Assembly (NCBI GenBank): GCA_964247055.1
Contig: OZ176054.1
Coordinates: forward strand, 10,230,001 to 10,294,000
Source: Paragordius varius
Lineage: Eukaryota; Animalia; Nematomorpha
Length of the DNA stretch: 64,000 nt
Reading direction: 5' to 3'
This document shows positions 3,327 to 58,900 of this stretch, piece after piece. The stretch's first letter is position 1. Each line of letters begins with the position of its first letter. The position numbers and the translations under genes were made by a program. The notes beneath the pieces were generated by a model. That model was not told the origin of the DNA and searched no databases. It saw only the letters and a list, made by a program, of their open reading frames with translations.

Positions 3327-3368
<42 letters not shown>

Positions 3369-16693: not shown

Positions 16694-16739
<46 letters not shown>

Positions 16740-24283: not shown

Positions 24284-24899
24284 TATTAGGATATATTTAA
24301 TCTTTGGAAATATATTTGATTGTTGAAAATATATGATTGATTGTTGGGAATACTGAAATATAATAATTGTTGAAAATATATGATTGTTGTTGAGAATACA
24401 AAAATATTATTAGTTTATATATTTTGATTGTTGGAATTATTTGATTGTTGAAAATATATATTTGATAGTTGAAAACACATAAATATTATTGAGTAATATA
24501 TTTTGATTGTTGGAAATGTTTTTTGTTTGTTGAAACTAAATGAATGATTGTTGGAAATACTATAATATTATAGGGCAATAATAATTATTGGAAATATAAT
24601 TTAATTGTTGAAAATTTATGATTGATTGTTGTGAAAACTAAAACATTATTGGGTTATATATTTTGATTGTTGGAAATTTTATTTGATTGTTGAAAATATA
24701 TTATTGATTGTTCAAAATAATATTAGGTAATATATTTTGATTGTTGGAAATATTATTTGAATGTTGAAACTATATGATTGATTGTTGGTAATACTGAAAT
24801 GTTATTAAATATATGTTGGAAATATAATTTGATTGTTGAAAATTTATATTGTTGGAAGTCCTAAAATATTATTACATATTTTGAATGTCGGAAATATTA

Positions 24900-32353: not shown

Positions 32354-33493
32354 GGGAAAAGTGTTTATATAATATTCTACATTGTTTTTATAGCATATCC
32401 ACCATACTTCATAAATCATATATAGTTTAATCTGTTTCCCAAAATTTAAGTTTTTAAAGCAAAGTATGCTATTTTAAGTTTTTTTATGCAATAATCTAGC
32501 AATATATTTAAATTTTCGGACATTTTGAATATACTTGACAATTTTAACAAGTCCGAAAAATGTGCGACAATTAAGATTTGAATAACAGAATAAATTATGC
32601 ATTTTATAAAATAAAAGATTAATTTGGGTTGACTGACGCATAAACTTCTATCAAAAAAATATTATTAAACATAGATTTATAGGACTCCTGTTCCCAAAAC
32701 AACGCATCATAAGAATTCTGGCATATTTACTAATAGACTATATTTGGTTCATCAGGGTATATTTTTATGTGGGACGTGTAATACATTTTTAAAATAATTT
32801 TTTTAGTTTCCATAATTTTTGATAATACTTTTTTTAAAAAGTGAAAATTTGGTTTAACATTAAATTAAAATACTTTGTATTTTATTATATTTTAGCAACC
32901 GAAAATGCTATTTCATATTTAAAATAATGACAAAAATTAGGTATGGAATTTTAATTCCAAGAAATAGATATATTGAATTTTTGGGCCAATTTATATGTAT
33001 ATATGTATAATGCGTTTATGTGGCGGTTTTATTGAAAAAGCTAAACATTACCAATAATAATTTTTTCCCTATGTATCAATTGCAAATAAAAAATATACTG
33101 TAAAAAATTAACCCGTTTAGGGTTATATAGGGAAACTAAATAAAGATCAAACCTATATCGTACATAGCGGATTGGTAAATATTGAAATTAACAGCTAATA
33201 ACATATTTGTTACGGCAATAAAACGATCGATTTAGGGCGAAGGTCAAAATACCGGCTATATTAATAGGCGCAAACACAGTTAAAATTATATATATATATA
33301 TAACATATAACACAAATATAATTGATAAAAAATATTTTTTCATCGCTTAAAACAAATATTGATTTAATTATAGCGAGGAAAGACATAGAGCCGTATATAG
33401 TTCGTTAATATTTATAACTAATAAATACCTCCTTCGTATCTCTAAAATAATCATAAAAGGTTGATTTCCGCATACCAATTTTTTTCTACAAAA

Positions 33494-36400
33494 ATGATCC
33501 TTATATTCTTAGCACTGATATTTTCGGTTAAAGGTAATTTTTACTCAATTATCAAAGTTTTTTATCTAAATATGTAGTTTACTTGACCTTTGTTCCTGCT
33601 TGTATTAAAATTGATAAATATCATATATACACATTTTTAAAAATATTTTTAAATCACTTCAGTGCGGGCTATGCGAAATTGAATTTAACATACAAAGTTA
33701 CAATATTTTTAAGCGTATTACTTAAAGATAGCGCCAAACTATTGAATAACTTATACTCTGTAAATTAAAAAATTGAGTCGATCGATTTTTTCCCAATTGC
33801 ATATAAAATTATATATATTTACAAGAGGTTCTGTAACATACTCTTGGATAAACTTTATGTTAGCAAACATATGGTAGTTGAAAAATGTATTTTACCGCAT
33901 AATAGCATCATTTTTCATACAAATTTACCGTAATTTTAACTTTTTTTAACTCTGAAAAAATGTAATACGTGATTATTACTATTTTTTACTAACTTTATGA
34001 TGCATATAATATCAAAAAACAAAATTTATTTAACGGGTTTTTTCTTTGTTTATAATTCTATTCGACTGACCCCTAGTGTGCGATAAATATGCTATTTTTA
34101 AATCTTATATAGGTTTGTTTGTTGTGGAACGACCCCATTACTTTCATGACCATTTGACTTTTGGCCCTTATTACCAGAAAACATACGCTATTTTGTGGCG
34201 AGATCCAATGGTTACTGTAAACGAAGTTATACACAAAAAATTGTATTCACATGTGGCCCTGGCGCTCAAAATAGTTCCAATGAAAATTGCCCCAGAAAGT
34301 ATGGATTTTAATATCGTAAAGTTCTGAGGCGTTTTTAAAAACCTATTATATATATATATTGCTGCAAAATAGTAAAAACCCTCCATATATAAATTTTGAG
34401 TGATTAAACCCTATTTACCTATTTTTTGTAATTATGTGACTTTTTTGGCAAACTCGGGTTGTAACCGGTTAAAAATGCATTTATAAATACATTTATGGCC
34501 GTGACTGTAATGTCCGCTTATAAAAGTAACCGATATTAAACATATTACTTAAAATAAATATAAAATGGTATAAAATATATTTATGCGTGTGGATAGTAGG
34601 TAGGGCTCCGGACTCTTAGAATGGTGTTTAGTGCCAGAGTTTAAAGTTAAAATTGGGCGATTTTTCCATCATAACTCAGTCCTGTGTATGCGAGTATTAA
34701 AGTTTTCACAATTCCTGATACAATTTATTTCCTTACTCTTTAGGGTAAAATGGCCAGAAAAAAATTTTGAAGGACCAAAATTAATATTTTTCTTGTCCAA
34801 GGGTCGTGAGAATACCAATAAATATTTCATAGTTCTTTGTCCCATTTCCAGATATATCTATACTCCAAATAAGTATGTTAAAAAATAAATAATAAATCAG
34901 GGCCATAAAAAGCACATTTAGGGCCGCGGTTTGAGTACCACAGTTTAAACCGAATTATTTTTATATCATATTCTATTAATTAATGGCTGAGATCGATTAA
35001 TAGTATAAAAATTGTGTTTTAATTGAATTGAAATTTGATTTTTTGCACTCGTATTATAAATTAATATGTCATGTCACAAATTTAATACCACACATCAAAA
35101 ATATATTGTAATTTACAAACACCATTGACCTATTTGTATGCTTTAATCAAAAAGTTGATAAATTTTATTATAACATTTCATTAAAGTCAAAGGTTTTATT
35201 TTTTATATTAATTAACACATAATAACATTAGTTTTTGACTGGTTCTTGTTAAAAGCGGTGAGGGTCTCGGTTATGAACGCATAAATGTTAAGCCCGAACC
35301 TTATATGTTACATTGTTTTTTTGTATTGTTATTATTTTTTAAAATTAAAATTGTGAAAAATATTAAATTTACAACATATTAAAAATGTGTAACTTCTAAC
35401 TTTTACGTAAAATTTAACCAATTTATCCCATGATAATATCAAGTAACCCTTAAAACCTAATTTAAAGCACAGTCGAATTTTTATATTCTTATTAGCCCAA
35501 AATCAAAAACAGCTTAAATAATCGGATGCGTTATTTTAAATAATTTTTCATTAGTGTATCAATTATCTGTCCAAGGTCAAGCAGATTTTAATATACTAAG
35601 TAGACATTTGTTATCTTATCGATTTTAATTATGTCATAAATAATGTAAACATGTACTATATTTAATTTTTTATATTTCGTCTTTTTATCAATAGACATGT
35701 CCCTTTTCTAAGTAATAATTTGTCAAATTAGAGGTGCGAAAATTGGTTATAACATTGTGGATGTGTAATTTTTTGCACTAATTTTAGATATATTTTTGTT
35801 TCTAAAGATTTCTGGTTTAAAAATTATTAGACACAAGCATAATTTATTAGAATAAGTACTTATTATTAATAACAGTAAGAGAAATAGGAAAGATATTTTA
35901 TATAGTAGATATTTTGTGAAATTTAAGCAAAAAAATATAAATTTTTACTGCATACGTTTTTGTTGCTCGAATATTTTCGAAACCTAAAATAAAAAAAATG
36001 AGCCGGCTTATTCACATGGGCAAATATGAGTTTGCTTAACGGCCATTCACATGACTTATAATGTTGCTTGTCAACACTAAAAAGGTTTGCTCGTTTCAAC
36101 AACAATAATAATTAAATATAGATTATCAAAATTATATTTTTTGCATAATTTTTGGCTACTTATTTGCAAAACTTAAAAAATAATATATTTCTTTACCGAA
36201 ATTTGGTTTTGAAACTATATATTTCCTTAATATTCAGTATTAACCACCCTAATACTCTATCAAGAATCCCATTATTTTTCTATTGCATTTAATTAATTTT
36301 TAACGTTATTAATTTTATATATATTATAGCCATTAGATATGGAATCACAGCCTATGTATACAAACACAAAAAGGGTTTTAGATCTACAATTGATAAAACC

Positions 36401-39400
36401 TACCATAACCTAGAAAGTAGTATATTATTACAGTGTTAATCAATTTTATACTCTCTTAATTTAAATATTTTAATATTATTTGTTTTTATAAAATATAACA
36501 TTTTTTATACCTAGTTATAAAATGGATAAAAGTTTATTTGGATAATTTTTTATCATGGTGTCTCAAGTTTTCAGAAAAAATGATTGTTCTTGTTTTAACC
36601 AATGGTTTTGATATTACATTAATTTAAATTTACAGATATTTTAGTAATTTTTAGGATGAGAATAATACGGTAAAAAGCCTAAGCCTATATGCCATAAATT
36701 TTTACTTAAATATTCTTTTCAAAAATTGATTCATACAAAAATATTAATTATATAAGGTTGGTATTGTCTTTAAAATAAATAAATGAAAAATGAAGTTAAC
36801 TCTTTAAAACCGTCATAAACTGCGGTTTTCCTCGAAAAAATGAGGTTTTTTGGTTCCGAAACGGTTACAAAATGGTTGGTTCCAATGTTAATTCCTGCCT
36901 AAAACCCTAATATTTTAACCCTTAGCAAAGCATTAACCATATACAATTGATATAAAATGCTTATTCGCCTTTAAAGTCTTATATATTTAATAAAATGATT
37001 TTAATATTTTTAGCTTTATCAATTTCAAATTAATATTACATTTCTTAAATAACCCGATAGATATCGATCAAAATGCCAGAAATGTAAGAAGTATATGCAA
37101 GGCCTTTCTCATTAGAGGTAACATAACACCATACATTTTTTTATTTTAATTATAATTTATTTTTTAATCCTATAAATCAACAGAAAATTTAACGGCACCC
37201 TTGATATCTTACCGAGTCAAACGCAGAAATACTGGCACAAATTATGTTTTAAGAATTTATGATCCAAGTATATTCTTTATATCACATAAAAATCAATATT
37301 ACAAAGACAAAACATTAAAAGTATTAGCCAAATATTTTTTGTAAAGAAACCGATATTTTATAATCTTTCATTTTTCTATATAGCATAATGATTACAATGC
37401 AAATATAAAATTTAGTTTGGTACCAATCAATTCTAAATGGTTATTTTGCAACCCAAAACAACATATTTTCAAATTTATGGGTTAAAAAAATAGTTTCCTT
37501 TTGTCCAGGGGTGTCCAACCGCAAAATTAGCCCAAAGGTTTCCATGGACCACAGTCAAAATATATATGGGCATTCATAAAAATTTTTTTAGATCTCAAAA
37601 AGAATACAAAATGTAACAATTTTTCTCGTCGTTCTTGCTATTTGGATAAACTTATTTGTAACTTGTCTAAGGAATATTATTTTAATCAAGATTTAGCGAA
37701 CATGCTTTTACAAATTATACATATTTTTGGCGGGCCGCGTGTTGACCACCCCTTAGTCTTTAACTTTTCAGTTTTGTCTTGATATTTTTTTCCTTATTGT
37801 ATATTTCATTATTTTATTCCTTAAATATATAATTTTTTTTGTTCATTTAAAAAATTATAGAATACCAAAAAATTAATAAGATTCATGCCGGAATCGCAAT
37901 CACCTCTCTATATCCCAATAACTCGGTATACGTAGTTGGAACTAAAACGAGAAATAAACCAAACACTTTTTATCAGATTGTGATGAAATCTAAAACACAC
38001 CATCGCTCTAAAAGAGGTATATATAAAACTACATTTCTGAAAAATGATGATAATTAAACCTATCGAAATATATATATATGTTTTTATTATATACTTTAGG
38101 TGATATCACAGGTATAATATTAACCAATATATAATTTTTATTTTGGCTTATCATATTGATTTTTTAGGGTAAAAAAGTATAAATAGTCTTAAATTAATTT
38201 CTCGTTTTCTAAAATATTTATACATTCTAAAATATAAAATATAAATATTTTATCATTTTATATTTTTTGTTGTTGGAAAAGAGCTCTATTATTGGTAAAA
38301 GAGGTTTTTTAATTGACTCATAGACAAGAAATTTATCTAATTAGGATTTTGTTCATATGCTTCCTTTAAAGTATAAAAAAGCTTAGTATAAATCTATCCA
38401 TGCACGCCTGTACTTATAATAAATCTTTCATACACTTCATACATTAAAAAGCACTATTTTAGGCCATATCTGTATTTTAAATGGTTAAATGGTATCTAGT
38501 TTACATGTCTGTTGCCATAGATGTTAATTTTTTCACAAATGTAACTAATAAATACGAAAAATCTCATATATGGCTACTGACATGCAAATTAAAACTCACT
38601 TTTAGCCATTTTAATAGAATTTTTTTAATTATCATGTATTATGAGCATGTACCAAGAATGAAAATTTTTTTTACGTAATTGCATACTTTGTACAAAATTG
38701 TAATAAAATCTTAATATTTAAACAGGTTTATTCAAAGGACCCTCGAAACGTGGTATTAATTTATTGATTATATTTAATATTAATATTTTAGAATTGGGTA
38801 AGTGTTATACTTATAAATATTATATATACATAAAATATATAACTGTATGCACTTTATTGTCGGCCAATCTCACATACAGTATCAATAAATTAAATTACAT
38901 TCTCCATAATTAAGTATAATTTGAAGAATATAAAAAATTGTACCGTCCATTTGTTTTTTTACCCATACGCCACTGTATTACAAAAAGTGGCCATGACCAA
39001 ATATACGTTTGAGCATACTATACTTAAATTACGTATACCATTAAGAGTGTCCTTGAACACTTCAAGTTGGTCCTTGAACATTTCAAGTTGGTCTTCAAGT
39101 TGGTCCACTTTTTTGTTTTTAACTTTTACCAATCAAATCGTTAATAATTCATCTATTATATTGTTTTTAACTTATATTTCTATTATTTAACATTTAATCA
39201 ACTTTAATCTTTGAGAAACCGTATACTTGATTAATTTCTTAAAATAATTTTGGATATTTATAAGATTGTAACACTAAATAAAAAAATATGTAAGTTTTCT
39301 GATTAATTACAATTTTTAAAAACATATAAAAGTTAACAATTTTGTTGAAAAATAGTTTGGAACAAAAATGTGGTTTTTCAATAAATTTTTTTTTTTTAAA

Positions 39401-42400
39401 TGAATAAATATATTATAAATAAAGGAAATTAGATTAATAAATAATAAAATAAAAAAATAAATGCAAAAATTATGGTTAAATGAAATCTTAAAAATTTTAA
39501 GGACCATTTTGAAGTGTTCAAGGACCACTTGAATAAGGACCAACTTGAACTGTTCAAGGACTTTCTTGAAGTGTAAATGGGATATTATATTTCCAAATAA
39601 TGCCTATCAACAAAGAAATTCACAACAATTTAAAAAAATGTTTTAAAATAATAAGACTAATTTTTATATACAGTATGAGTAAATATATATTGCTAGAAAG
39701 TTATATTGCCAAATAGGATATGCAGCAAAGAGATTATTATTGGCTAATAATATTAAAAAGTAAAAAAAAATAATTATAATTTAATAATACTGCCCTTTGT
39801 ATATGCTATTTGGCAATAAATAATAACGTTCTAGCAATGTATACTTATACTTGCTGGCAAATTTTGTTAAAAAAGCTTAAAATATTTACGAGTAAATTAG
39901 GTGCGAAGACTTATAATTGGGTAAGTAAATCAAATTATGAAAAATTTTGTAAAAATAAAATTTTTCTATATTTTTTCCCAATTACTAAAATATCAGCAAA
40001 ATAAAATTATTTTTATAGGTAATTTTAAAAAAATATTAGAGTTCACAGCATGCCAATTTTAAATTAAAAAGTTAAATATACCAATTTTGTAGATTTGCTC
40101 TTTTCTGCATTTCGATTTCCTTAAATAATAGATAGACTAATATAATTGGCTAAAATATTTATTTTGCTAATATAGAAAAACTTTACAAATCTAATATCTT
40201 TTTTCATATTTAAGTAATAATTATATTATAAGCAAAATATCGACATGGGTTATATTAAAATTATTTTTCTACAGCCTTACTACATCATCAACCAATATTT
40301 ATTAAATTTAATAATATGATATGATATACAGATGAGTTTTTCAACGACGACCCAGTAGAAGAGGGAGAAAACGTTTTAGGTAACTTTTTTATATTTTTCA
40401 AAACAATAAGTTATACGGATATTTTGAACAATATAATTCTTTTAATCTGCTTGACATTACTTAATAGGGTTAGTATTTCATGCGAAAGCAATAGATTATT
40501 CTTTTGCCAAAATCTTGTTAAAAAACATAACGCTTAAAAATTACTGCTAGTTTAAATATATATTATGGCCAAATTCAGCAAAAATGTAATTTTAAATTAA
40601 ATTGGGTATGTCGAATTTAGAATCCGAATGTAGAAGTTACCTCAGATAAATATTAAAAATATTTTTTTTAATTTTATTTATTCAATAAATATAAATGGCT
40701 AAATCTATTTCATTTAGTTTTGTAATAAGAAATTTAGCTTTGTGTTTTAATGAGCTACGTTAGGAAGTGAATAAAATGCAAAAATATATTTATGTTAAAA
40801 TCAATAGTAATAGATTTAATTTTGTAGTTCTGAAAATTTTACTAAATTTGATTTGATTTTAAAAATGCATTTTTGCACACACGCTTTTTTATTTAAAACA
40901 GCTGATTGACCCGTTCAATACCTAACACGAAAAAACAATAATTTTATGATTAATTCAACCCAATCAACATTACAATAATATTTTTTTTAAAATATAAAGC
41001 AATTTAAACTATAGAAGTAACAGTGTAACTCACTATATTTTTAAATAAACGCTTTTTCTTCATTATAGGTACTAAAACATGTTTAAAAACATAAAGTCAA
41101 TGAGCTAGTTCACAAAAGCTTTTAATACTGATATTTAATACTTTTTTGAAAATCCCATATACACTTTTTTCCGAGTTTTATGCAATACTTTTGATTTTAT
41201 TATAAAAATTTTATTTAGTTTAGACCCTTTACTTTATAAATGTAGAATCTTAATAAATCTTATTAATTAAGTAATATTTTTATTATATATTTGTTTGATT
41301 CAAATTGAATGCTTAAAATCAGTTTTTTGGTTTAACATGCCAAAATTATTTTCGCTTAACGCTGGTAATTTAAAATTAGGTAAACTACATTTTTGGCGCT
41401 AAATTTGGTTTACTATAAATATAATATATATATTACTAAAGTATTATATATTTAAATCATCACTATAATCTTGGGACAAAAAACACTATACGTTACTTAT
41501 AAAAAAATTATTTAAAACTTTTAAGGCGGAATGAATTATACAGACCTTTCAAATGATGATGATGCTGATATATATCAATATGTAGATTACTTCATTGTCC
41601 AATATAATTTAACGTAGATTTGAATTTTTCCTTCGCATACTTTATTATCATATTGTGATCGTTGTAATTGACAAATTAAAAAAATTATTTTCCTACAGTT
41701 ATAGAAAATGTCCAGAATGCAGATGTGATGATGGATAATATTGAAAAAATGTTAGAGGAATTTATGCATCCGGCTTTACACCATCCATTGTCTCCCATAC
41801 CTGAATTAGACGAGGCTCTTGATAGTCCGCCTGCTGAATGGAGTACATTTTTAATTGTTTTTTTTCTATTTTTATAAAGTTGACGTTGGGTGTGTTTTTA
41901 CATAGCGACTTGAGATGCCAGTATCAAAAGATAGTTTCCAAAAAAATATGTTAAATATAAAGCGCATGGCCAAATTTTTGTTAAATATTAATTGATTCAT
42001 GTTTGTTTTCAGTATAATATCAATTATTTTTACTGCCTTGGTTGTTTATTTATATATAATATTTTAGATCAAGTCAACGAAAACGAAGGTAAGTTTTTAC
42101 AAAAATTAAAAATCATTGTTAATTATAAAAAAATAACCAGTTTAGCTCTAATTTTTTAAGGATAAGGATTGATTTTATAAATTATGAAAGCTTTAACATT
42201 CGCTTGTCCAGAGATGTGATGATAAATTTTTTTTTAAAGTTTTAACTCTGCACACACTAAAGCTAAGCATGACACCTTAATTATTGCTTTTATTATTTGA
42301 TAAGCATTATACTTAAATTCCCAATGATTTTTATTTTTTTGGAATATTACAGTTTAACAAAATTTAATAAACATACCATGTAAGATTGTAAAACTTGACT

Positions 42401-45400
42401 TTGTTTATGAAAATATATTTTATAAATTTTTATTTAGAAATTTTGAATGCAGTGAATCCGAATGGTACTTAAATAAAAATAATATATAGCGGAACTTGAA
42501 GCATGGCTGAGTGATGTATCAAGTATATATACTTCATATTTCATAAATGACATTAATATTTGTAGTCATAGAGGCATATCACAAAATAGATTAAAAATTT
42601 ATATAGTTTACCATATTTTGCCTTAATTTTAGATAATGTTTTTTAGGTGGCAAAATAAAGAATATATATTTTAATAAAACATTCAATTATATATTTAACA
42701 ATTGTATACATTTTATGTAGAAAAAATTATGGATTAAAAGATATTATTTCTCAAAAGATGTCTTTTTACTATATAGGCATTGCATCAGAAGATTTCAATG
42801 CAGGTATGTATAAATATTTATTATTTTTAATTAAACAGATTATTAACCAATTTAACACTTAAATTATCGAGGATGAAAAAAGGAACGACCATTTTTGTAG
42901 AGAATTTTTTCTGACACCATCATCAAATATAACACTGTGCGCAAACAAAATTTTTTATGAATTATAACCAGCATTCTTTTGCCGGATTTTATTTGTTGAC
43001 GACTTTGTTTGTAAAATAATTATGTAATTTTTAAGGATCAAAAGGTTATTTAAAAATATAATTATAACACTTGAATTATTAATAAAATTATCACATTTTA
43101 TTGCATATAAATAGTTTAGAATCTTATAGCTAGGGTTTAAAGTTTTAGCAAAAAAAGTTTTTTTCTTAACATAAATACATAATTCAAATTTTATTATGAA
43201 ATATAAAATATTTTTTTTCATTATTAGCTTAACCACTATTAAATCATAACATTGAGTGTATAATAAATTTAGGGTATTTTAAAATCTTACATAAGCAATA
43301 TATGAATCAATACAAAATAGGATTTACAAGTAAATATCAACAGGTTCGTATGAATCCCAGTAAAATTATTATCTTGTTATACAAACTTGTAACTGGGATT
43401 TGTAAGATTATTGGTTGATATTCCACAACTTGTAAATCCTGTTTATTTATTTATACTTTGAAATTTCGGCTCATATCAGACACCATAATAAATCACTAAA
43501 TTAATTTGACTCACAAACCAGATGATGATAATAATTATTATGTAATGATTTTTCATTAATATATAAGTTTTTTAAATGAATAAAATATGATTTAATATTG
43601 AGCTCTCTAGTAAATAATAAAATAATATTTAAATGAAGTTATATAACATTTAAATTATGTATTAAGTATAAAGAAGCATGATATTTAATCAGAGTTTTAT
43701 AAAACCCCAACTATAGATTTTAGACTACTATTATAAATATGTGATAATATGATAATAAATTTTAGTCTACTAAGTTTTATAGTTATTTAAATCATCCTTA
43801 TTTTTTACTTTTTGCCCAATTTTAATTTTCTCACAATATTTTTAAAACTAGGTCGTCAACAATGTTTGGGGTAAATGAATTCGCTGGTTATTACCCCGTG
43901 AAAAAATTTTGTTAAAATAAATTGACCCTCTTTTTTGCCAGTGTAATATGTCGATCATATCTTTTCAAGAGGATAGCGTCTTCTGTCTTTCAGAGGTTGT
44001 GTTCGACTCACAAACTGCATCTGTAATTTCCTCAAGTATTGTCTCAACCGACTTCTTTAATTGATTCGTGTGTTTTAGATGAGTTTTATTACCATCCTTT
44101 GTATTGTAGGATAACAAATGTCCCCTTAATCACTTTCCATTATGTATAAATAAGTATAAGACATTATGTCAAAAAATATAATTGGCATTGATCAAGCATT
44201 ATTATATTATAAAGTTAAGTATATGGTAGTATAAAAAATTTATATAGGGATATCTCCCGATCACATTAAAATGGCAATAAATAAAAAAAATGATTTTTTA
44301 TATAATTATTGCAATTTAATTTATTCGGGACAGATTTAATATATTTTTAATTAATTTTATCATTTTTGGCTAGTACCATACATTTTCAATATAAGATTGG
44401 CTGCCTTTAATTTACTAGAATATTTTATAGAATGTAAATCTTTTTAATAATTTATATACAATTAAGGTTATTAGTTCTAACCCAAACAAACCCCTTAAAA
44501 TATATATTAACCCATTGCACACCCTTTATAATGATCACGATTAAGAAAAAATACATGGTGATATATCCATCATAACCATTTTATCCGATTTGTTAACATT
44601 AAATCATTCATTATCTTCAGTTTTAGTTAATCTGAAATATTAAATTGTATTTAAAAAAAGAAAAAACTGGGAGGGTGTACCCAACTTTTTGCCATAATCA
44701 TATTTAAAAATCGGAAAATGCAATTTAATTAGCAAAGGCTAGTTAATTAAATAGCACTTTTTAATTTTATAACTACTAACGCGCTATATTTAGGGTAATG
44801 AATGTTTAATTTTCTTATTTATGGATGGTCAAAAATTTTTATTATAAAAGTTTTATTTTAATTTAAAATGGAAAAACTTTTCAATATCATATATAATATA
44901 AACATTTATTTAACTTTGTAATTGAAGTTTATAAAGCCATGTGATTTTTTTAATATTTGTATTAGAGTTTTGCGCTCTACCTTCTTAGCCTTTAGAAAAC
45001 ATGTGATATTTCGGTAATTGAGAGGGAATTGAGATTACTTTAAAATTATATATGCGAGCTTATATTTATTTATCTATATCACGTTCCATAATTGACTACA
45101 TGATATAAATGTATATTCGCAATTTATCAATATCACAATTTAGCTATTGAAGGACTACAATTTGGTAAATATTTAATGACTAACATTTAACTTACCGTAA
45201 TTAGCTTCGGTATGAAACAACTAAACAATTAATAATAAAAAATGAAAAATAATTTAAAAAATTCACATAACATTATGGACACAATTTTTTAAGTAATAAA
45301 AATAAGCGAATGTTTCCATTATTATACCGCCTTTAATTATAATCCTAAAATTATTATTAAATTAAAATTTAGCTTATATTATGAAAACCCCAATGATAGC

Positions 45401-47239
45401 CTAATGTTAGTATTCCATAGCAGATTTAATATATGCAAGTTTGAAATGAGTGAAAACAATAAAAATGCGATAGACTGAATTATTAGAAATTATAAAAAAA
45501 TATTATTATGCATAAACCACAATATACCATTTACTGTTATAATTCACTTTTAAACAATTCAAATTCACCCTTGAGCAATTCAAATTCACCCTTGAACAAT
45601 TCAAATTCACCCTCAAACAATTAATTCACCCTAAAAATTATTTATGAAACTTCGGTCTAATATAACTTATCATTAAAACTAAATATATTTTTATGGCAAA
45701 GTTTATTATTTTTTCAGTATTATTTTGATTACATACAAAATTTCTTTTTTTATAAATATAAAAAATATAGTTAATATATAATCTTAAAAAACACATAATT
45801 TATTTTAGGGTGAATTTAAATTGTTCGAAGGTGAATTTGAATTGTTTAAGGGTGAATTCGAACTGTAAATGGTATACAATTGTTTTAACTTAACGCGCAA
45901 CGAATTAATACTACTATAAGTCTTTATTAAATATGATATGCTTAGCCGTTATTAAAAATGGGATGAAAACATGAAATGAGGTGGAATGGCGACTTTTAAA
46001 AAAAACAAATAATAATTTATATGTATTAAAATTGAGATATAAAATATTAAACTAGTTAAATGATAGTATTATTTTATTTTTTATACATTCTCTAAAATGT
46101 GATTGATTAAATAAGATTTGGAGCTTATGGCTGATGTTTTAAGCGATAGTGAAGAATCCGAGATGGAAGCAGAAAGTTTGATTCCAGAAGAAGATGAAGC
46201 TGGTATGTTTCAAACTGTTAAATATTTAGGTCCATCCGATCCAAATAGAAATAGACCACGTCCAGAGGACACCTCTTCTGATGAGGAGCCTGATGAAAAG
46301 AGACGTATTCTTTCTACAAATAATATATATAAAATTATTCATTCACATCAATCGATTCCTAATAGAATAAAAATAAACCTAAAGATAGATATATTGTTTA
46401 AGATTCATTTTCTTGGAAAACCTGAAAATCCATAACTAAGAGTAAACATAAGTGACATTATCTTTTATTTTAATCCCGTCCCCCGTATACCATGATTAAA
46501 AAATTAGATGTAAAAGTTGTGGATAATATAGCGGTATATAAATTTTTTATTATATTAGCTAAAGTATCGGATAAACAACCCAATGAAAACGTTCCTAAAG
46601 AAGAAGGTATATTATAATATTAAAAGTTTCTAATGAGTCTGATTATCTCATTTTATCAAATAATTGTCAATTAATCAATTTATTAGATAACAAACAGGGC
46701 TCAAATAAGAAAAAGGATAAGGGTATTAAACCGCCAAGACCTGGTAATAAAATTTATTTCCAATTTATGCTTTAAATATTATTTTAAAATATTTTTTTGT
46801 TCTGAATATAGGTAGAAATAATGGCAGAAATAATGGGAGAAGCAATGGTAGAGAAACAAGATTAGATGGTAGAAATTCAGGTAATGTATTCTATGAGATA
46901 GGAAACTTATATCAAAAAATATATTAATTTTGATTCCAAAATATAATTATAAAAAGATATGGTATCATCATGAGGGTCTCACTTTTTATCCTAATTACTT
47001 TAAAATTGGTAATGCCTTGTCCAGCGAATTATGATTGAATAATTTTATTTAGTACCGAAATCGATTCCCAAAATTCCAACTGGTGTTCAAAGTTCCCTTT
47101 TAGGAGCCTTAAGTGGTAAAATATAATATTTAATGAAATTGAATTCGACGACTATTATACAACATATATTTTAATGATATTTAGCAAAATTGGCTTTTGG
47201 TATGACATAAAATTATATATCGTGAGATTGATTATAATG

Positions 47240-47272
<33 letters not shown>

Positions 47273-50200
47273 TATATATACATATATAAATTTATATTAA
47301 TTTTATAGTTGGCAAAGGTAAAAGTATACATTATTTTATAAAAAAATTTTTTTTAACCAAACACATACATATAGGCGGACTCTTGGCTGGAGGTTTTATT
47401 TTTATTGTAATTTTAATTATTTAGGATTTTTAGCAACTACAATCGGAGGTATATGAAACAGTATAGTTTAAGGTTTAATTGGAGGTCTCGTTGGATCAAA
47501 AGGATTATCTTTCTCAAGTGAGAATATATTATTTGACAGTTTTTGGTTGTTAAATGGTCATTTGTTTCACTAAAAAATCATGATAAATTTTTTGCCCCTT
47601 TAATATAAACGTTTTCAATTGCTTTAAGTTGACACGTTGAAACTATCGGTTTTTATAATGTAATTTTTATAAAATTCGAATTTTAAGACACATTTGATTG
47701 CCATATGTAGAATATCGAATTACACTGCTTTTGAAATAATGTATAGTCAGCTAATGCTTTCTTTTATGTAGACAACAACCAAGATGTATCAATTTCCAAC
47801 ACAGAAAGTATGTATTTACATGCACCTTATGTAATTATATTACTTTTATATGCCAAAACTAATTTTTGTGCTGCATGAATATAGCAACCAATAATGGTAA
47901 AATGTATCATAAAATTTTTAGTAACTAGTTTTATCATAAAAGTTCCCTTAAACTCATCCTTCCAAGCAGGTAAAACTTTTCATGTAACTTAATATGTTAA
48001 TAGGTACGACAGTTGAGCCATATGACGGTAAAATAATATGTGATAAAAAATAGATACTGAAGAAAATATATACTTTTCTGATTCCAACGTAACTTCAACC
48101 ATCATCTCACAAACTGATGATTGTCTCTCGATCAAAATTGATGTACCCAATACGGGTTAATACATTTATCTTTTTATTATTAATATTATAAAATATTTTT
48201 ACTGAATCGATTATATTTGGGTAACGATACTATCCATATATATCCCATTAAAATTTTGAAATGAATGGAAATAATCATGTTACATTGGTTGGCTTTCATG
48301 CCAGAAAGTATTAATTGTTACTTGAAATTTAAATGTATATTTTACAAGCATTATATTAATTATTTTTTATATAGTGGTATTAACCAGGGATTGGAACCGG
48401 AACCGTTTTTGGTTCCAGTCCAAGATCACTTTTTTTGCTTATGATTCCGGAAGAAAAATTCATTTACTCAATTATATATAAAGCGAGACATATATGGCTT
48501 GAGTATTATGCCGGATTTTTTTGTTTGCCCGCTTAAAACCCATTTATAATTAGAACAGGAAAAGACCTGGGTTTTTATCGCCTAAAAATGTCAATTTTTC
48601 CAAAATTTGGGGTTATTTTAAAGGTAAAAGTACCCAAAATCTATTATTTAAAATAAAAAAAATAAAATTTATATATCCCAAAAACAGTACGGAACACACC
48701 CGAGTTGCGAAATCGTAAAGTAAAAAATTTCCATGCGAAAAACAGCTTATCTAAACACATTACATTAAATTATATTAAATACAATATCTGTAAGTATTAA
48801 TTCACAAACTTCATAAAATCGTTAATGTTTTGATAATGCAACTTTTCCCTAAAAATTATATAAATCAGTTTACTTTCATTTTAAATATGTGTTAGGAAAA
48901 CTAACAAATAACGTTTTACATATGTATAATTGTATAAATAGTTGAAAAAAATAAAAAATATGATTTAAAAGATGGGAATTGTAAAAAAATTGTTAAAAAA
49001 GAAAAATGAAACCGTTTTCGGAAAAATAGATGTTTTTAAAACGGTGCCGAAAAAAAGCAAATGATTCTGGTTCCACAAAAACGGTTCCGGTTCTAATCCC
49101 TGGTATTGACCCATTTAGCTAAAATTAAAAATGTATGCGTAATTTAAGTTATATTACTGTTAATTCGTACTTTTACCAATATTTTGAAAAAAATACTGTA
49201 ATTTCCCTTTTTCCAAGCTGCGTGCTCTTAATGTAAGAAGTGATAGTAACTAAAAAAATAACTAATGGATCTTACAAAGGTTATTTATGATGTCAATTTG
49301 AATGACCTGCTGGAAATCTAAAAATATATGCACCTTAAATTTTTTTAGTAAAATATTTATATTCTATGACAATATGCCCATAATTTGGTGCAACTAAAAA
49401 AACACAGGCATAAAGTATGTTATATTTTTAAAAAATTGAGACGTATATTAGTAAGCAAAGTTATTTTATCAATTATTAAAATATTTATTACTATATACAT
49501 ATACAGTGTTGGAGAAAAGAAACTGCTTTGACCGAAAAGCATCCATTTATGGGATTCAAGGTTATGATATGTGGATTGAGGATGGGGAAAATGGAGCAAA
49601 TTATATTTTTGAATATGAATTATCGCTAGTACCAGATCAGAATGGCAGGGTTGTTTTCAACATGTATGGTAAGAAGAGGATAACACGAATGAATTATTTG
49701 GTATGCAGATATTTTGTAATAACATCCTTTTATAGTAAAATAATTATCTTATAACAGGCAAGCATTATAATGCTTGCCTGTTATAAGATAAATTAATAAG
49801 GCTGTAATTTAGCGCGTTGTGAAATTTTTTTTTTGTTCGGTAGATGTTGTTGTAATCTAACATTAAAATATTCAACCCGACATTAAATACACCTCTATAA
49901 TATTTTGCAAAATATCGATAACTGCATTCTAAATTTTATTTGCGGAAAGTTAAATATTTTATCACTCTTTTGTGCCACTATAAAAATATTAATAATATAC
50001 AGAATAGGTAAGTATACACTGCTAGTTTTCAATTATATAAAATATATATTATTGGCTAAAATAAAGAGCAAACTATAAACAAATAATATTGCTCTTTTAA
50101 CGCTATCTGGCTATAATTAATAAGTAGTGATTAACCCATAATGTAGAAAAATGAAAGACACATACAAGAGTACTATTACAAATTGATACCTGAAAATACG

Positions 50201-53023
50201 CAGTTTTCTAAGTACATATTTTATATTTATTTTAAAAAATTTTGAGTTTCCCCAATTTATTAGGTTTATAATTTTGTTGAGATATAATTATTTACAAATA
50301 ATCAAATAGAATGACACAAGATTTGTGGTTGAAAACATAGAACCCGGGAATTACTCTATTATGTTACAAACAGCATATGGCAGAGAAAGGGACATATCTC
50401 GTCAAATAGTGACAGATTTTTACTGTAAGTCAATTCGTTTTATAATTATATTCTTTAAATCTTTTAGTTTAAACCATGGGCAATGCAAAACCCTCGGCTG
50501 TTTTCAGGCAGCCCGTGAAAATATCCGAATAATACTAAATAAAAACGATTGTATAATTCTTTAAATTCTATATATTTAATCTTATTGAAAAAAATACTAC
50601 AATAATATCGAATTTCCCTTAATATGTATTAAAATTAGATGATATTATTTTCTTATACATCTATTGTCAGCATTTAAAAAGCTTTTTAGGTGCTTCATCA
50701 AAAATATTATATAATATTTAATTTTAGACGACGGCGAGACACTTACTGGTAAATTTTATAAATTATATGCAAACTTTACTGCGCTTAATAATATTTTGCG
50801 GTTTACGCAACCAAACAATTGAATTCAATCTAAAAATGAACTAAAAAACAGAGTTTAAAAACTCTATTGATATACCATATTATTATTGGTTAAAATTTTT
50901 AAATGGTAATTAACGAATCATAAGCAATATAGGCCTTATTATTTTCGATATGTGGAAAATTTTGATAAATGGTTTAAAAAAGATATATTATTTGTTAAAA
51001 AGCTTAAACTTCAAAATTCGCATCATTGATATGTTTCATTCGGATCTCAAAGTCAACTATGCAGAAAAATGACAAAAATTTTTTAATAGAGGTGGTTGTA
51101 TCGCACAATTACATATAAATAGAGCATGATATGTTTCATCTTCACCCTATACCGCAGTTTAATTTTTGTTAGTTAGTTGAAATTAGATTAAAAAAATATT
51201 TAATTAAAATTATAAAATTAAACATTTTTCATAAGACAATAAATACAATTATGATTTGATCGACCATATTTATGGCCATTAATTCCATATTAAAGTATAC
51301 TTTTTTGTTTTATCTTTGATAAATAAACACACAGAGCTCTTAATCCAAAAACTCACTTAAAATTTGTCAGGTTTTTATATTTTAAATGTTTCACTGTTGG
51401 ATTATCGACGTTATAATTTATCCATATAATTATTAAACCAATCTAACTATGTGTAAAAATCATTCATATCAACAGCTGAGATATTGGGTTTTCTCGCTCT
51501 AAATGCTACTTAACGCTTTATAACCTTAATTATATATAATAATATTCAAAAATAAAAGGTATTTCGATAAAATATTTGTCTCTCTCTATATATATTATAA
51601 ACATTTTAATGGTTTACGGTCTAATTTATATCTCTTAATCCAATTATAATATACCATTTGCACTTCAAGAGTGTCTATGAACACTTCAAGTTGGTCCTTA
51701 AACACTTTAAGTTGATTTTTAAACACTACCAAATTTTTAAGTTTTAATTTAACCATAATTTTTGCATTTATTTTTTATTTTATTATATTTTTTTTAATTT
51801 TTATTATAATCTTTATTCAAAAACCACTTTTTTGTTCTAATGTTTGTCCAATTTAACAAAATTAATAACTTTTAAATATTTTCAATGAAAAATTATAATT
51901 AATAACCCAGAAAACTTACATTATTATTAATTATTTTTAAAATCTCAATGTAATTAAAAAAAAAATTGAGAAATTAATACAGATGTACGATTTTGAATGA
52001 TTAAAAGTATATTGATTTAAAATATCTGTTAAAAATTATAAAATAGATGAATGATACACGACATGATTGATAAAAGTTAAAAAAATAAGTCAAAGGACCA
52101 ACTTGTGGTGTTCAAGAACACTCTTGAAGTGCAAATGGTATAGCTGATCTTAAAATGAAATTTAATGTCAAAACAACATTATTACATTTAAAGTCAATTA
52201 ATTGTGAACTATAATCATATAATTATTTTTCTATGCCAGTATTTTATCCATTTAACGAAAAATCAAGAATTAATTTTTAACGAGTACGAGATGAGGATTA
52301 TTTATATATTAATTTAGATTATTTTTTTAATGATGCGCAAAAACCATCGATTGCATAATTTTGCCCAAATTCAAAAGTGTCTTTTCAGTTATTTAAATTT
52401 CACACTCACTCCGGGGTAGTACCACAAAAGAAGACGTGTTATTAATTATGTTTTAAAGGTGATTTATTGAAAATAACCCAAAAATATTTAGAACCTGCTC
52501 TTTTCATTTGGATTATAAGATAATGTTATCAAAAAGCTTAGTCCAAATTTTCTGAATATCCTAAATAATTGTTTCATAAATTGTATTGGTAATATAGAAA
52601 GCGAAAATATACTTAAGGATGATTATGGTTGTATCAATAAAAATATCTTGCAAGTATGTACAAAATATTTGGAATTGAACCCAACCAACCAATATCACAT
52701 ATTTTTGGAGTCAAAAAGTAAAACTTTATTGGATACGCTTACTGATGTCACTAAGTATTTTTAGTTAAAATATTACAATCATATTTTTTCTTGTAAATAA
52801 ACCGAAAGCGAAAAAGATATCAATAGAAATTAGTCCAAATATACTTATATGTGATGACATAAATTTAGTATAAATATGTTTATCTTAGGATGGTAATTGT
52901 TTCAATATGAATTTGAATGGAATAATTTTTGATGATGATGAATATTTTTTGGTGTATAAACCCAAACCCAACTTTAACAATTTTTATGGGAAATTGGCTT
53001 TCTCGGTTGTTGGATCTATATGA
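33494..53023 (+). CDS. Paralog 2, apparently complete: signal peptide, 2 FN3-like modules, RSKR, acidic micro-exon region, basic region, Gly-rich hydrophobic segment, FN3-like module(s)
   Basis: Exons: 33494-33533 (MILIFLALIFSVK), 34113-34298, 36330-36416, 37061-37117, 37184-37267, 37861-38016, 38726-38752, 40332-40379, 41699-41842, 42068-42088, 42438-42464, 42490-42522, 42777-42803, 46116-46202, 46230-46304, 46559-46606, 46687-46743, 46812-46880, 47053-47115, 47309-47317, 47375-47392, 47425-47448, 47473-47517, 47772-47807, 48004-48027, 48054-48155, 49507-49700, 50310-50424, 50728-50748. Tentative last exons: 52520-52717, 52827-52867, 52889-53023 (TGA). All junctions are GT-AG and phase-compatible. 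The first 18 exons are confirmed by paralogy with gene 1; exons after 46880 have no paralog in the window and the last three are less certain. Confidence 0.85.
39036..39582. mobile_element. TACC-family MITE type B
   Basis: TACCATTAAGAGTGTCCTTGAACAC...TTGAAGTGTAAATGGGA; in gene 2 intron. Confidence 0.8.
42933..43943. mobile_element. Foldback-type element with CACTG...CAGTG termini
   Basis: Inverted arms share ATAACCAGC..TTC and TTGTTGACGAC; related to 62302-63003; in gene 2 intron. Confidence 0.65.
43965..44130 (-). mobile_element. Possible Gypsy/Mag-type integrase C-terminal fragment
   Basis: Minus translation GHLLSYNTKDGNKTHLKHTNQLKK resembles the G..SY.V...G...RH.NQL(K/R) motif at the C-terminus of K02A2.6-like LTR integrases; no LTR seen. 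Confidence 0.35.
45525..45874. mobile_element. TACC-family MITE type A
   Basis: TACCATTTACTG...GAACTGTAAATGGTA; well-preserved inverted 21-bp arrays; in gene 2 intron. Confidence 0.85.
48385..49102. mobile_element. hAT-type non-autonomous element
   Basis: TIR CAGGGATTGGAACCGGAACCG / CGGTTCCGGTTCTAATCCCTG; 8-bp TSD GTATTAAC / GTATTGAC (7/8); in gene 2 intron. Confidence 0.85.
51652..52140. mobile_element. TACC-family MITE type B, opposite orientation to the other copies
   Basis: TACCATTTGCACTTCAAGAGTGTC...ACACTCTTGAAGTGCAAATGGTA near-perfect TIR; internal sequence is the reverse complement of the other copies. Confidence 0.85.
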
Positions 53024-54522: not shown

Positions 54523-55536
54523 CAGTGTATACAAAAAAATATTAGGAAAATATATATATTCCGATAGAAAAATGTAACAGGAATCTGTGATGCTGGTAGT
54601 TTTAAGCTTACGAGTGATATAAAAAAGTTATTTACATTTTTGTGGTAGGTTATCCAAATTTGACCACATTTTTTGTAATAATTTTTTTTTTGATGAAAGC
54701 TAAATGCTTTATTCCAAAAAATATAACTAAATTATATCAAAAAACTACTTAAAAAAAGCAAAACAATATTTTTATAATATTTTAATTTTTAGATGTGGTC
54801 TAGTCCCATTTTTGCTCTTCTTAAACGGGCTAGTTCTTATAAAACGCAAAAATACCGTAGAAAAATTCATTTTTTTGCAAAACTTTGTAGAAGCGAACTT
54901 CATCCTTTTTTTAGGCATGATGAAAATTTTATAAAAACTTTTTTAGATATTGTTAAAACACTTATTCCAAAATTAATGATTTTGAACATTTCTATCACCT
55001 CAAAGTTTTGATTAAAATATACTTTTGCCTTCAAATTCATGCAAAAAATTGTATTTTTATATAAAATTCACCAGAATTTGAAAGACCATTAATTAAAATT
55101 CTAAAGCTTTATAAATGTTCAGCATCATCATATGGAGATATGCATTTTTTATAAAATATTTTTTTGGTGTCCAAATTTAGCATACATTTAAAATTTTATT
55201 GCGAAATTTTGGCATTTTTGCGTTTTTTTAAAGAAACCTAGCCAGTTTTAAAAGAACAAAAAACTTTGAAACTTTCGGCACATAATAAAATTTATATATC
55301 ATAAAAATATTTTTTTGCTTTTTAAAAGTAGCTTATAATGTTTAGTTATATTTTTGGAAAGAAGCATTAAGCTTTCATTGCCATTTTTTATATGGAGCAT
55401 TTAGGACAAAAGTGTAATAACTTTCTTATATCACTCGTAAAGGCAAAACTAAAAGCAAGATGATATGATATATTTTACTATCAAAATATATTTATTTCAT
55501 CCAGATATTTTTCATCACCCCTAATTTTGTACACTG
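54523..55536. mobile_element. About 1-kb non-autonomous TIR element (CAGTG...CACTG ends); partial copies at about 385-1090, 6590-7350, 8637-9110, 10990-11273, 21170-21580 and 63470-63960
   Basis: Ends CAGTGTATACAAAAAAATATTAGG / CCCTAATTTTGTACACTG-TA, long imperfect inverted arms; the motif GAAAGCTAAATGCTT(T/C)ATTCCAAAAA recurs in the other copies. Superfamily (Tc1-like vs CACTA-like) not resolved. Confidence 0.65.
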
Positions 55537-55989
55537 TATATATATATATATTTCATAAGAATATTTTATATACCCTTCGATTTAGTGATCAATGTAATTA
55601 CAGTGTCGAGTGTAATGACGCATTTTTTGATTTTTAATACATTACCAGAAAGTTTTTTGCGATTATGATGTAAGTATTTTATCAGTTTTAGGTGATGATA
55701 TGCAAACAAAAAAATGCAAACCTACTACGTAACTGATTCGTAAATATCATAAAGTGTAACATTTACTAATGTATTTGATACGGCAATGAAAGTATTGGCC
55801 TAAGGTAAAAATACTGGTTATGTTTTTAGTCAAATTCAGCCAAAAATATATATAACACGGTAAAATTATCCGTTAAAATAAATATTGATTTTAGGATCGT
55901 TAATAATTAAAACTAATCGATACCGTGGTATCTATAATTATAAAAAGTCGATTTTCGCGATTGATATCATAATTATTTTTTCTAACAAA

Positions 55990-58900
55990 ATGATCCTTAT
56001 ATACTTGTCCCTGATATTTTCGGTTAAAGGTAATTTTTTTATATAATTGTTTTTTATCAAATAATATATAGTTAACTATAATTTTAACAGTATTGTCAGT
56101 AATTGATGGAAATGATCCATATTTTTAATAATTTTTTTAAAGAGCGTAACACTTTTCCAATGCGTTTGGCTAGGAAACTGAATTTAATATAGCCTGAAAA
56201 ACAAGCTAAACAATTATATATTTTATATTGTAAACTATAATTTAACTGTTATGTCAGTTATCGAGTCTGTGAAAAGTTAAATATCTGAAATAGACTATAA
56301 TTGAAAACACGCCCAAAAAGTGCGATTTAATTAAATATTGTGAATTATTTTTTTCATTTTTGCACTTGCCTACCAATATTAAATTTATACAATATTAAGT
56401 AATTAATAAAGAAGTCTTGTAAAAAGGGTCAATAATTTGGCTCTTTGTAAAAAATGATTTACCATTGCCAAGAAAAATTCATTTTCAAAGTTCTGTATGG
56501 ATTTGAATATAGAACCAGCACAGGCTTTGCAAATCTTTTATAATCCTATATTTGAAGGATAGATTATCAGAGTAAAATGAAATTAAGCGAAAATCATATA
56601 GAAGATTGAAATTAAAATAATATAGGCAAGTAACCAATGATTTGGATACGTAACAAATATTGTTAAGCCATATTTTTAAATATATGATCTAAAGATATTC
56701 ATTATAGTAATATTAATTTATATTTATACATCTTAATTAGAAAGTTTTTCTAGACACTCCATTTAATTTGCAAGCAAGTTGTCAAATAATTAATACATAT
56801 TACACAACGTTTGTTTTATGAAATATATTTTAATATCCTTTAAAAATACTGATGGTAAACCAAAGTGGCACAAAATGTTTTTCTATCATATAATAATAAT
56901 TTATTCTGATTAAAATTTCAGCCAAAAGGTGCTGAAAAATATTTTTTTTGTGATCAAACGCTAAAAATCCATATAGCTTTGTCGGTTGTGGAGCCCACTT
57001 ACTTTCATGATCATTTGATGTACGGCCCTTATAACCAGCAAACATACGTTATTTTGTGGCGAAATTCAAAATATACTGCAAACGAGATTCTTCGCAATAA
57101 ATTGTATTCACGTGTACCCCTGGCGCTAAAAATAGTGCCACTGAAAATTGTCAATGAAAGTATGGAATATATATTTTTGCTATACGCCAAGAAACCCATA
57201 ATTTTTTAAGCGGTAGAGAAAACTCATAATTTGGATTTTATAAAAAGTCAAACCTCCATTTATAAAAACGCTTGTGTAATTTAACTCTTTTACCCCTTTT
57301 GGTTTTAGTATTTTTTTAGGCAAATTAGGGGTGGACCGCTAATGCATTCATAATTGTATTTATCGTGACTGTATCGCTAGAATACTAACAATAAAATCAA
57401 ACATATGTTCATTGCTTGATTTTTAATAATTATAAAACATAAACTTGTATTGCAGTGAAAAATAAAATTATAAAAGGTAAAAACCAAGATAAATATTTTT
57501 TAAACTCCAACAATATATTTTTAAACCTTGATATTATTAAAAATAATTTAATTGATAGTGAAATATATCATTGATTCTGTTACCAATTTGCAAATTAATA
57601 TTTATTTCCCTAAACGAAAGATTATAATTAATATCAAGATTAAAAAAATGTGGCTGTCTTATAAAAATATATGTCTTTTAATTAGGTTTTGCCTTTATAT
57701 TTAATTTTCACTGAAATGGAAAAATTGTTATTTATTTGCCATCACAATGTTTTGAACCCTCCTAAAAACAAATTTTGATAGGGTGATTTTGTTTTTTATG
57801 TCTAATTATATCATATATTGAATTACGGTTGATGTCCATAAATATCTTCTGTTGAAAACAGTCGGACCAGTAATTAATTTTGACCGTCAATGCTACATAC
57901 AAATTTACTATAAATATAAAAAAAAGTTTATAATATATTTTCTCTTAAATTGGTTTATAAAATTGAATTTTTTCTTTTTATGAAACTCATAATTAATCAG
58001 AACTATGATTAAATTTGATCTCATATGGTCAAAAGTCTATTATTAAAGGCAAAAATATATTGTACATATATAAAGTAATGTTTCATATTTTTTGCATGAA
58101 CTCTAGGTGTTTTACCATTTATATTTTTTGTTACCTGATATCATTGTTTTTGATTTATTTTAAAGCGGTCACAATCACGCTGTGAAACATTTATATCCGT
58201 TTGATGTGAACAAAGCTACATTATTTTACATACATTATGTCTAATAACTAAACCGCCTTTTTAAAAAATGATTCAGGATATTATAATATGTGTAACTTTT
58301 CGATTCCAACTAGTCAAACCAATTTCCTAAGCCTTAACTCTACTAAAAGGGATAACAGTTGATATAATTCAATTTTTTCGTAACCAAAAACTATACCTTA
58401 CATTATTTATTACCTTTGCTATAATATATTCATCAGATTATTTACTATCTGCCAAAGACAAGCTTAACATTACGTATACTAAGTAAACATTTGTTACCTT
58501 GTCGTTGTAAATTATGTCATATAAAATTGTACGTATGTATATATGATTACGTATTTCACACTTTTAACGAAAGATAGGCATCCTTTTTCTCCGCTAAAGA
58601 TATTCCAATCTATTTTTATTTGTTAACAGTGTGATAAACATTATTTTGGTGACTATTTGTGTAACCAAAAAAAATATATTTTATCCTAGGGTAATGAACC
58701 TTGAGCTAGACACTGATGGTTAATGAGCCGGCTTAAGTGACACATATCAAAATCTAAAATCTCTTATTGCTTAAGAGTTGAGATAGGAAAATTTCCTGTC
58801 ACCATTTTGGGGCTAAATAACATATAAAACAATTCTACAAATTTTATTTAAGCCTGTGCATTTTTTATATTGCTTAATTAACATATATATAATATAATTA

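Follow-up and report, generated by a model that had tools for sequence, protein, structure and literature searches.

A predicted secreted-protein family in Paragordius varius, with three constrained paralogs and a long run of symmetric phase-1 exons, many of them micro-exons

Schistosome micro-exon genes (MEGs) combine a signal peptide with a coding region that lies mostly in very small symmetrical exons; they are alternatively spliced and show accelerated evolution, with a ratio of nonsynonymous to synonymous substitution rates (dN/dS) raised to near 1 (PMC4350168). Their exons measure 6–81 nt, mostly 15 nt (PMC4350168, PMC10526429). The bicycle and megacycle effectors of aphids carry many small internal exons that open at codon position 2, which corresponds to intron phase 1, and bicycle proteins are secreted, their gene structure being more conserved than their sequence (PMC9168663). 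Introns at signal-peptide cleavage sites are in phase 1 more often than expected (PMC1626468), and symmetric exons tend to encode disordered regions and often derive from tandem duplication (PMC3632108). Here, we analyse a 64,000-nt stretch of contig OZ176054.1 (positions 10,230,001–10,294,000, assembly GCA_964247055.1) of the nematomorph Paragordius varius, hereafter the window, which contains three paralogous genes built from symmetric phase-1 exons down to 6 nt: gene 1, on the minus strand from 19533 and cut by the window start; gene 2, on the plus strand at 33494–53023; and gene 3, on the plus strand from 55990 and cut by the window end. The three copies are intact and constrained, and quite probably encode an orphan, lineage-specific secretory-pathway protein of about 750 residues from transcripts that would be spliced constitutively.

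The assembled model of gene 2 has 37 exons and a stop-free coding sequence (CDS) of 2256 nt (751 codons). Its first exon is followed by 31 exons in a row (exons 2–32), every one a multiple of three and in phase 1-1, with lengths of 186, 87, 57, 84, 156, 12, 27, 6, 48, 144, 21, 27, 33, 27, 42, 21, 87, 75, 48, 57, 69, 63, 9, 18, 24, 45, 36, 12, 48, 24 and 102 nt. The symmetric run ends at exon 33 (phase 1 to 0), which is followed by exon 34 (0 to 1) and the 21-nt exon 35. Exons 16 and 17 find no support in the paralogs and their splice scores are only moderate, which leaves 29 solid exons in the run. The preliminary description had counted 25 consecutive phase 1-1 exons, a conservative subset of this run, and 13 micro-exons of 9–48 nt; both the run and the micro-exons are confirmed, the latter with a count of 19 among exons 2–32 at 6–48 nt. 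Fifteen gene 2 exons are 6–36 nt long. Exons of up to 36 nt make up 14.1% of the CDS and those of up to 51 nt 26.1%, and eight introns measure just 24–39 nt.

The evidence for this structure comes from the comparison of the three copies. A tblastx search of 33000–53500 against the reverse complement of 1–20000 and against 55500–64000 returned collinear matches in one consistent order. Exons were recovered by listing all stop-free, phase-1 segments between AG and GT and seeking similar segments of equal length in the other two copies, while exons differing by one codon were paired through local peptide alignment. The equal-length search gave counterparts, with their borders, for most gene 2 exons, and a phase-1-only dynamic programme found matching exon chains in all three genes. 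Genes 1 and 2 are 63–90% identical in their exons, against about 37% (ungapped) in the 30-nt intron flanks, a value that is random for the base composition, and all exons are stop-free in the three copies. This collinearity and the matching exon borders bear out the three paralogs at the positions and strands first proposed for them. Likewise, the proposal of a signal-peptide first exon followed by exons hidden from the track of open reading frames (ORFs) agrees with the paralog conservation and with the bacterial-style ORF listing, which yields only scraps across 33000–53500.

Chance assembly of such chains was assessed by scoring. The best phase-1 chain on the plus strand scored 161.8 over 24 exons, whereas 30 first-order Markov simulations averaged 3.0 and peaked at 7.7, with a scoring model that was partly trained on gene 2's own exons. 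The opposite strand scored about 0 and intergenic DNA no more than 3.6; chains in phases 0 and 2 reached 39.7 and 21.7. With splice matrices built from genes 1 and 3 alone, most gene 2 sites exceeded the 80th–90th percentile of the AG and GT sites of the region. An all-phase dynamic-programming gene model with a low exon penalty was discarded, as it over-predicted spurious small exons.

The exons are under purifying selection. Nei–Gojobori estimates of dN/dS between paralogs were 0.10–0.13 for the N-terminal exons 2–6, 0.19 for exons 7–21 and 0.11 for exons of up to 51 nt; these values are rough because dS (0.8–2.3 between paralogs, and 0.8–1.4 for exons 2–6 and 7–21) is saturated and the exons were chosen by similarity. 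The direction, towards strong purifying selection on the paralog exons, is nevertheless clear.

Splicing of the smallest introns finds good indirect proof in their lengths. The intron at 42465–42489 measures 25 nt in gene 2 vs 23 nt in gene 1, and that at 46203–46229 measures 27 nt vs 25 nt. As only one of these four lengths is divisible by three, the introns need to be removed for the conserved downstream frame to hold. The 27-nt intron of gene 2 is itself in frame and stop-free, and its retention would add nine residues; retention of its 25-nt gene 1 counterpart would break the frame. The tiny introns announced in the preliminary description are thus borne out, at 24–39 nt in gene 2 and with frame-incompatible lengths between paralogs. 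In a three-way DNA alignment, genes 1 and 2 both keep the acceptor and donor of the 6-nt exon 9 and the adjoining 39-nt intron. In gene 3 (62265–62275), AA takes the place of the acceptor AG of this exon, so that the 6-nt micro-exon has probably been lost in gene 3 only; the exon sequence, the donor and the 39-nt intron are still similar. On the minus strand at 12763–12746, between the fifth and sixth exons of gene 1, there is a candidate for an additional phase-1 exon of 18 nt, with good splice scores (4.7 and 6.1). It has no counterpart in genes 2 and 3 and may be either a micro-exon gain or a false positive.

Compared with schistosome MEGs, the locus shares the signal peptide in the first exon, the symmetric exons down to 6 nt separated by much longer introns rich in transposable elements, the clustering of paralogs and the lack of homologues beyond the lineage. 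It differs in that the micro-exons are a minority (14–26% of the CDS) set among conventional exons for folded-looking domains, in that the exons are under purifying selection (dN/dS of 0.13–0.19) whereas MEGs are accelerated, and in its many ultra-short introns (24–39 nt); moreover, the exon 2 profile search found no sequence relation to MEGs. MEG products are also much smaller than about 750 residues. The nearest analogue in the MEG world is the composite VAL-6 gene, which joins a domain to a MEG-like part (PMC4350168). With the aphid bicycle genes the locus has in common its many micro-exons, nearly all in one phase; unlike them, it lacks the CYC motif (its five cysteines stand in other contexts), contains large conserved domains with a sequence well kept between paralogs, and belongs to another organism. 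A third comparison is with modular extracellular and disordered proteins whose exons are in phase 1-1, the exon-shuffling class (PMC8001218, PMC3632108, PMC1626468), with which the locus shares the phase-1 intron after the signal peptide, the symmetric exons and the acidic or disordered linkers. It departs from this class in its extreme fragmentation, with exons of 6–24 nt and introns of 24–39 nt, and in that no recognisable shuffled domain (EGF, Ig, FN3 or other) was detected in any of the single exons searched.

Homology searches support the orphan status of the family. An exon 2 profile built from all three copies, the sole exon searched in this way, matched 0 proteins at E ≤0.001 among 1.84 billion cluster representatives, which upholds the earlier remark that the family is not a recognised one. 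Searches of PDB sequences with the profiles of exons 2 and 6 and with exon 33 gave nothing significant, and the ESM Atlas held no credible relative of exons 2 and 33. Neither did Pfam searches with 15 single-exon translations give any significant match. The FN3-like label used in the preliminary description is unconfirmed, as single exons 32–37 had no significant Pfam match; exon 34 gave a sub-threshold match to Y_Y_Y, an Ig-like family (E=0.067, 13.5 bits vs a cutoff of 26.6 bits).

In gene 2, all features lie on the plus strand. The segment at 33400–33493 probably contains the core promoter and a short 5′ untranslated region, given a block conserved with gene 3 and a TATA-like ATAAAAG about 45 nt before the ATG; the ~100 nt before the gene 3 start codon resemble the sequence upstream of gene 2. 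Exon 1 (33494–33533, 40 nt) holds the start codon and the predicted signal peptide in 13 codons plus one base, and ends in phase 1; its donor scores in the 99th percentile, and the exon is conserved in genes 1 and 3. Residues 1–13/14 form a hydrophobic N-terminus with the KD19 maximum of the protein (2.36) and V-K-G at positions −3 to −1; this N-terminus is conserved in all three paralogs and by a heuristic reading would be the signal peptide. Exons 2–6 (34113–34298, 36330–36416, 37061–37117, 37184–37267 and 37861–38016) have counterparts of equal length in genes 1 and 3, with AG and GT kept, except that exon 2 of gene 3 is 3 nt shorter. They encode a basic N-terminal domain of about 190 residues (14–203; isoelectric point (pI) 10.1) with two conserved N-glycosylation sequons and an identity between paralogs of 65–86% (values of exons 2 and 6 taken separately). 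At the end of exon 6 stands an invariant R-x-K-R (RSKR, RTKR and RSKR in the three paralogs), likely a cleavage site for furin or another proprotein convertase.

The exons that follow encode an acidic region (residues 206–395, pI 4.1, with 51 Asp plus Glu, 16 Pro and Ser-Asp-Glu runs) that is probably disordered. Exon 7 (38100–38111, 12 nt) has splice scores in the 98th–99th percentile and a gene 1 counterpart at 11724–11713 with the identical peptide DIT, and exons 8 (38726–38752, 27 nt) and 9 (38792–38797, 6 nt) are separated by the 39-nt intron, with sites conserved in genes 1 and 2. Support for exon 10 (40332–40379, 48 nt) is moderate, its weak gene 1 counterpart (5408–5364, 45 nt) sharing 5 of 14 residues. 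Exon 11 (41699–41842, 144 nt) is acidic and helical-looking, and its gene 1 counterpart (5035–4892) has the same length and 20 of 47 residues identical. Exons 12–15 (42068–42088, 42438–42464, 42490–42522 and 42777–42803), which include the 25-nt intron 42465–42489, have equal-length counterparts in gene 1 at 4364–4344, 3509–3483, 3459–3427 and 3396–3370. For the two doubtful exons, 16 (43994–44035, 42 nt) and 17 (45144–45164, 21 nt), placed by splice sites and ORF only, no gene 1 counterpart was found. Exons 18 and 19 (46116–46202 and 46230–46304), with the 27-nt intron between them, are acidic and Ser/Asp/Glu-rich, and correspond to 2035–1952 and 1926–1855 in gene 1, where the intron is 25 nt.

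A basic Lys/Arg/Asn-Gly cluster (about residues 396–455) is encoded by exons 20–22 (46559–46606, 46687–46743 and 46812–46880), with gene 1 matches at 263–216 and 148–89 and a tblastx match at 50–3. Exons 23–27 (47053–47115, 47309–47317, 47375–47392, 47425–47448 and 47473–47517) encode a glycine-zipper hydrophobic segment, which we read as one motif per micro-exon. It spans about residues 470–498, in exons of 9, 18, 24 and 45 nt that each open at a split Gly codon, and has a KD19 of 1.83 over residues 478–496. Exons 28–32 (47772–47807, 47885–47896, 47922–47969, 48004–48027 and 48054–48155) contain introns of 25, 34 and 26 nt and were placed by splice, ORF and coding scores, the paralog sequence for that part falling outside the window. 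From about residue 500 to 751, the protein shows an alternating hydrophobic, beta-looking pattern with five N-glycosylation sequons and four of the five cysteines of the 751-residue model, which contains no C-Y-C motif.

Exon 33 (49507–49700, 194 nt, phase 1 to 0) was read from its ORF and the donor TTG/gtatgc, and is required in the model because the phase-0 exon 34 (50310–50424, 115 nt, phase 0 to 1, acceptor in the 95th percentile) must be joined. Exon 35 (50728–50748, 21 nt, phase 1-1) has splice scores in the 96th and 93rd percentiles and 57% GC. After 50748, the last two or three exons are uncertain. The ending adopted here, the best among several possible ends enumerated, joins exon 36 (52598–52653, 56 nt, phase 1 to 0), an uncertain connector that was the best single one enumerated, to a terminal exon at 52889–53023 with an ORF after the acceptor ttatcttag and a TGA stop at 53021–53023. 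The alternative is a terminal exon at 52598–52764. An AATAAA lies about 45 nt 3′ of the stop, weak evidence in AT-rich DNA.

In gene 1 (minus strand), the exons found are 19533–19491, 17855–17670, 13748–13662, 13386–13330, 13266–13183, 11958–11803, 11724–11713, 8590–8567, 8527–8522, 5408–5364, 5035–4892, 4364–4344, 3509–3483, 3459–3427, 3396–3370, 2035–1952, 1926–1855, 263–216 and 148–89. Those of gene 3 (plus strand) are 55990–56029, 56977–57159, 58908–58994, 60173–60229, 61254–61337, 61406–61561 and 62204–62230.

Sequencing runs were also searched for the locus, which returned DNA-like runs (X1–X5) and RNA-labelled runs whose share of the sampled words was 0.00. The contigs of runs X1, X3 and X5 are collinear with the introns and so represent DNA, not RNA, and run X6 had no contig at the locus. 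A further contig, present in X1 and X3, matches gene 2 solely at 46554–46608, 46684–46873, 47042–47118, 47363–47395, 47470–47533 and from 48044 onward; these islands correspond to exons 20–23, 25, 27 and 32, and the sequence between them is unalignable. We read it as another family member, or else as an out-of-window part of gene 1 or gene 3. The contig joints were considered as splice junctions and rejected, as they come from this one related DNA contig that matches at conserved exons only. The contigs of run X5, which is labelled as a different organism from runs X1–X4, are 99–100% identical to the locus at a depth of about 3, which points to one species under two labels or to a sample that mixes host and parasite.

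The reading we favour is that the three genes encode a lineage-specific product of the secretory pathway. The signal peptide would direct it into the secretory pathway, a convertase would cleave after the basic N-terminal domain at R-x-K-R, and the result would be a secreted or surface glycoprotein with an acidic region, a basic cluster, a glycine zipper and a beta-looking C-terminal part of about 250 residues. Splicing would be ordinary and constitutive, with all exons included, which is the default expectation because the paralogs keep both the length and the sequence of every micro-exon. The approximately 30 phase 1-1 exons would then be an exaggerated form of the general phase-1 rule for signal-peptide exons and extracellular or disordered modules; since phase-1 introns are typical of signal-peptide boundaries and symmetric exons of disordered regions, the pattern can be explained without a system of variation. 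Several observations weigh against this reading. In five RNA-labelled runs of the organism, the gene words sampled are almost entirely missing, even those of an 801-nt stretch with an exon share of 42%. The 3′ end of gene 2 is ambiguous, and within the window the support for exons 16, 17, 24, 26, 28–31 and 33–37 consists of splice, ORF and coding scores. In addition, the saturation of dS makes dN/dS approximate, and the choice of exons by similarity biases the ratio downward. If the exon pattern reflected chance ORF fragments or decaying pseudogene copies, the missing RNA signal in the searched runs and the failure to find a homologue would follow, and yet dN/dS is 0.1–0.2 with dS above 0.8, all three copies are stop-free across the exons, the chain scores far higher than the simulated sequences, and the introns are fully diverged while the exons are conserved. 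This conservation pattern in effect refutes a non-functional locus, which we regard as extremely improbable. A division into two transcription units, with a secreted protein ending after the glycine-zipper exon 27 and a separate downstream gene for the beta-rich part, could draw on the fact that read-through at the exon 27 donor meets a stop after about 19 codons, giving a short tail; it is very unlikely, given that exons 28–32 keep the 1-1 phase and the tiny introns and bring neither a start codon nor a signal peptide with them.

More serious are the alternatives that concern the nature of the product. As proposed in the preliminary description, the symmetric micro-exons may be cassettes that are skipped combinatorially, as in MEGs, so that each gene would yield a pool of secreted variants. 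Exons 2–32 are all multiples of three in phase 1-1, and T is the last base of none, which means that skipping would never create a stop codon at the junction; the signal peptide, the orphan sequence, the clustered family and the introns rich in transposable elements speak for this reading as well, as does the presence or loss of single micro-exons between paralogs (the lost 6-nt acceptor in gene 3 and the candidate 18-nt extra exon in gene 1). Against combinatorial skipping stand the small share of micro-exons in the CDS (14–26%), their strong splice sites (mostly 90th–100th percentile) and the purifying selection on them (dN/dS of 0.11 for exons of up to 51 nt, where MEGs evolve faster; PMC4350168). 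Of the MEG-like proposal, then, the signal peptide, the phase-1 symmetry and the exons down to 6 nt stood, while the micro-exon share and a dN/dS of 0.13–0.19 told against it, and we consider such variation unlikely. An equally unlikely extension is that folded domains and a skippable run of phase-1 micro-exons were combined independently, outside flatworms and aphids, so that skipping would tune the length and charge of linkers and the count of glycine-zipper motifs and yield variant secreted or surface proteins at the parasite–host interface; if such exon skipping is real, micro-exon-based variation of proteins would here have arisen independently for the third time in a parasite. Somewhat less improbable, and still doubtful, is a type I membrane protein in which the glycine zipper (about residues 476–498) forms a transmembrane helix, with the N-terminal domain and acidic stalk outside and the C-terminal 250 residues inside. 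Its KD19 exceeds the usual transmembrane threshold of 1.6, and it has GxxxG packing motifs. However, the five sequons and four cysteines C-terminal of the segment suggest a luminal or extracellular side, the basic cluster precedes the segment on what would be its outer side, contrary to the positive-inside rule, and a lysine breaks the upstream hydrophobic stretch. With sequons and cysteines to either side of the hydrophobic segment, we favour a protein that is entirely secreted or extracellular over the membrane topology. In our view, the locus thus takes the phase 1-1 design of secreted-protein genes to a lineage-specific extreme and is MEG-like in architecture alone.

The three diverged paralogs (dS of about 1) within one window provide the best RNA-free evidence for exons of 6–12 nt and introns of 23–27 nt in this genome, in genes of a kind that escapes standard gene finders and ORF scans entirely. 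They add an orphan, constrained family of predicted secreted proteins to a poorly annotated animal lineage. They also indicate that a MEG-like exon architecture is possible without rapid evolution or micro-exon dominance, a warning against deducing a variation system from exon symmetry alone.

The surrounding DNA has an AT-rich, repeat-rich, animal-genome look, with 25% GC across the whole window, and an Rfam scan of the whole window gave no match. The DNA between genes 1 and 2 contains an AT-rich satellite whose unit of about 82 bp includes a 20/41-bp sub-repeat (TTGATTGTTGGAAATAT-like); the satellite shows a strong G-over-C skew and occupies 21610–21880, 24307–24806 and 26205–28040. It flanks a retroelement fragment at 22848–24068 (plus strand), the sole GC-richer part of the window (35% GC), whose ORFs of 132 and 126 residues look like endonuclease/reverse-transcriptase fragments of an element without long terminal repeats (non-LTR). 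Separate 21-bp arrays lie at 24916–25051 and, in inverted orientation, at 26009–26198. Intron 17 of gene 2 contains a very high-copy repeat (45452–46042) with many rearranged joints. Its summed contig depth in run X1 reached 2.9 million, compared with a few hundred in the flanking DNA; relatives of this repeat are found in gene 1 introns and upstream of gene 1 (9670–9366, 12556–12255 and 19148–18853). Another gene 2 intron carries, at 51650–52142, an element of about 490 nt resembling a miniature inverted-repeat transposable element, with 72-nt terminal inverted repeats that are 79% complementary, and copies of its arms occur in further introns of genes 1 and 2, at 39018–39112, 18397–18301 and 15013–14939.

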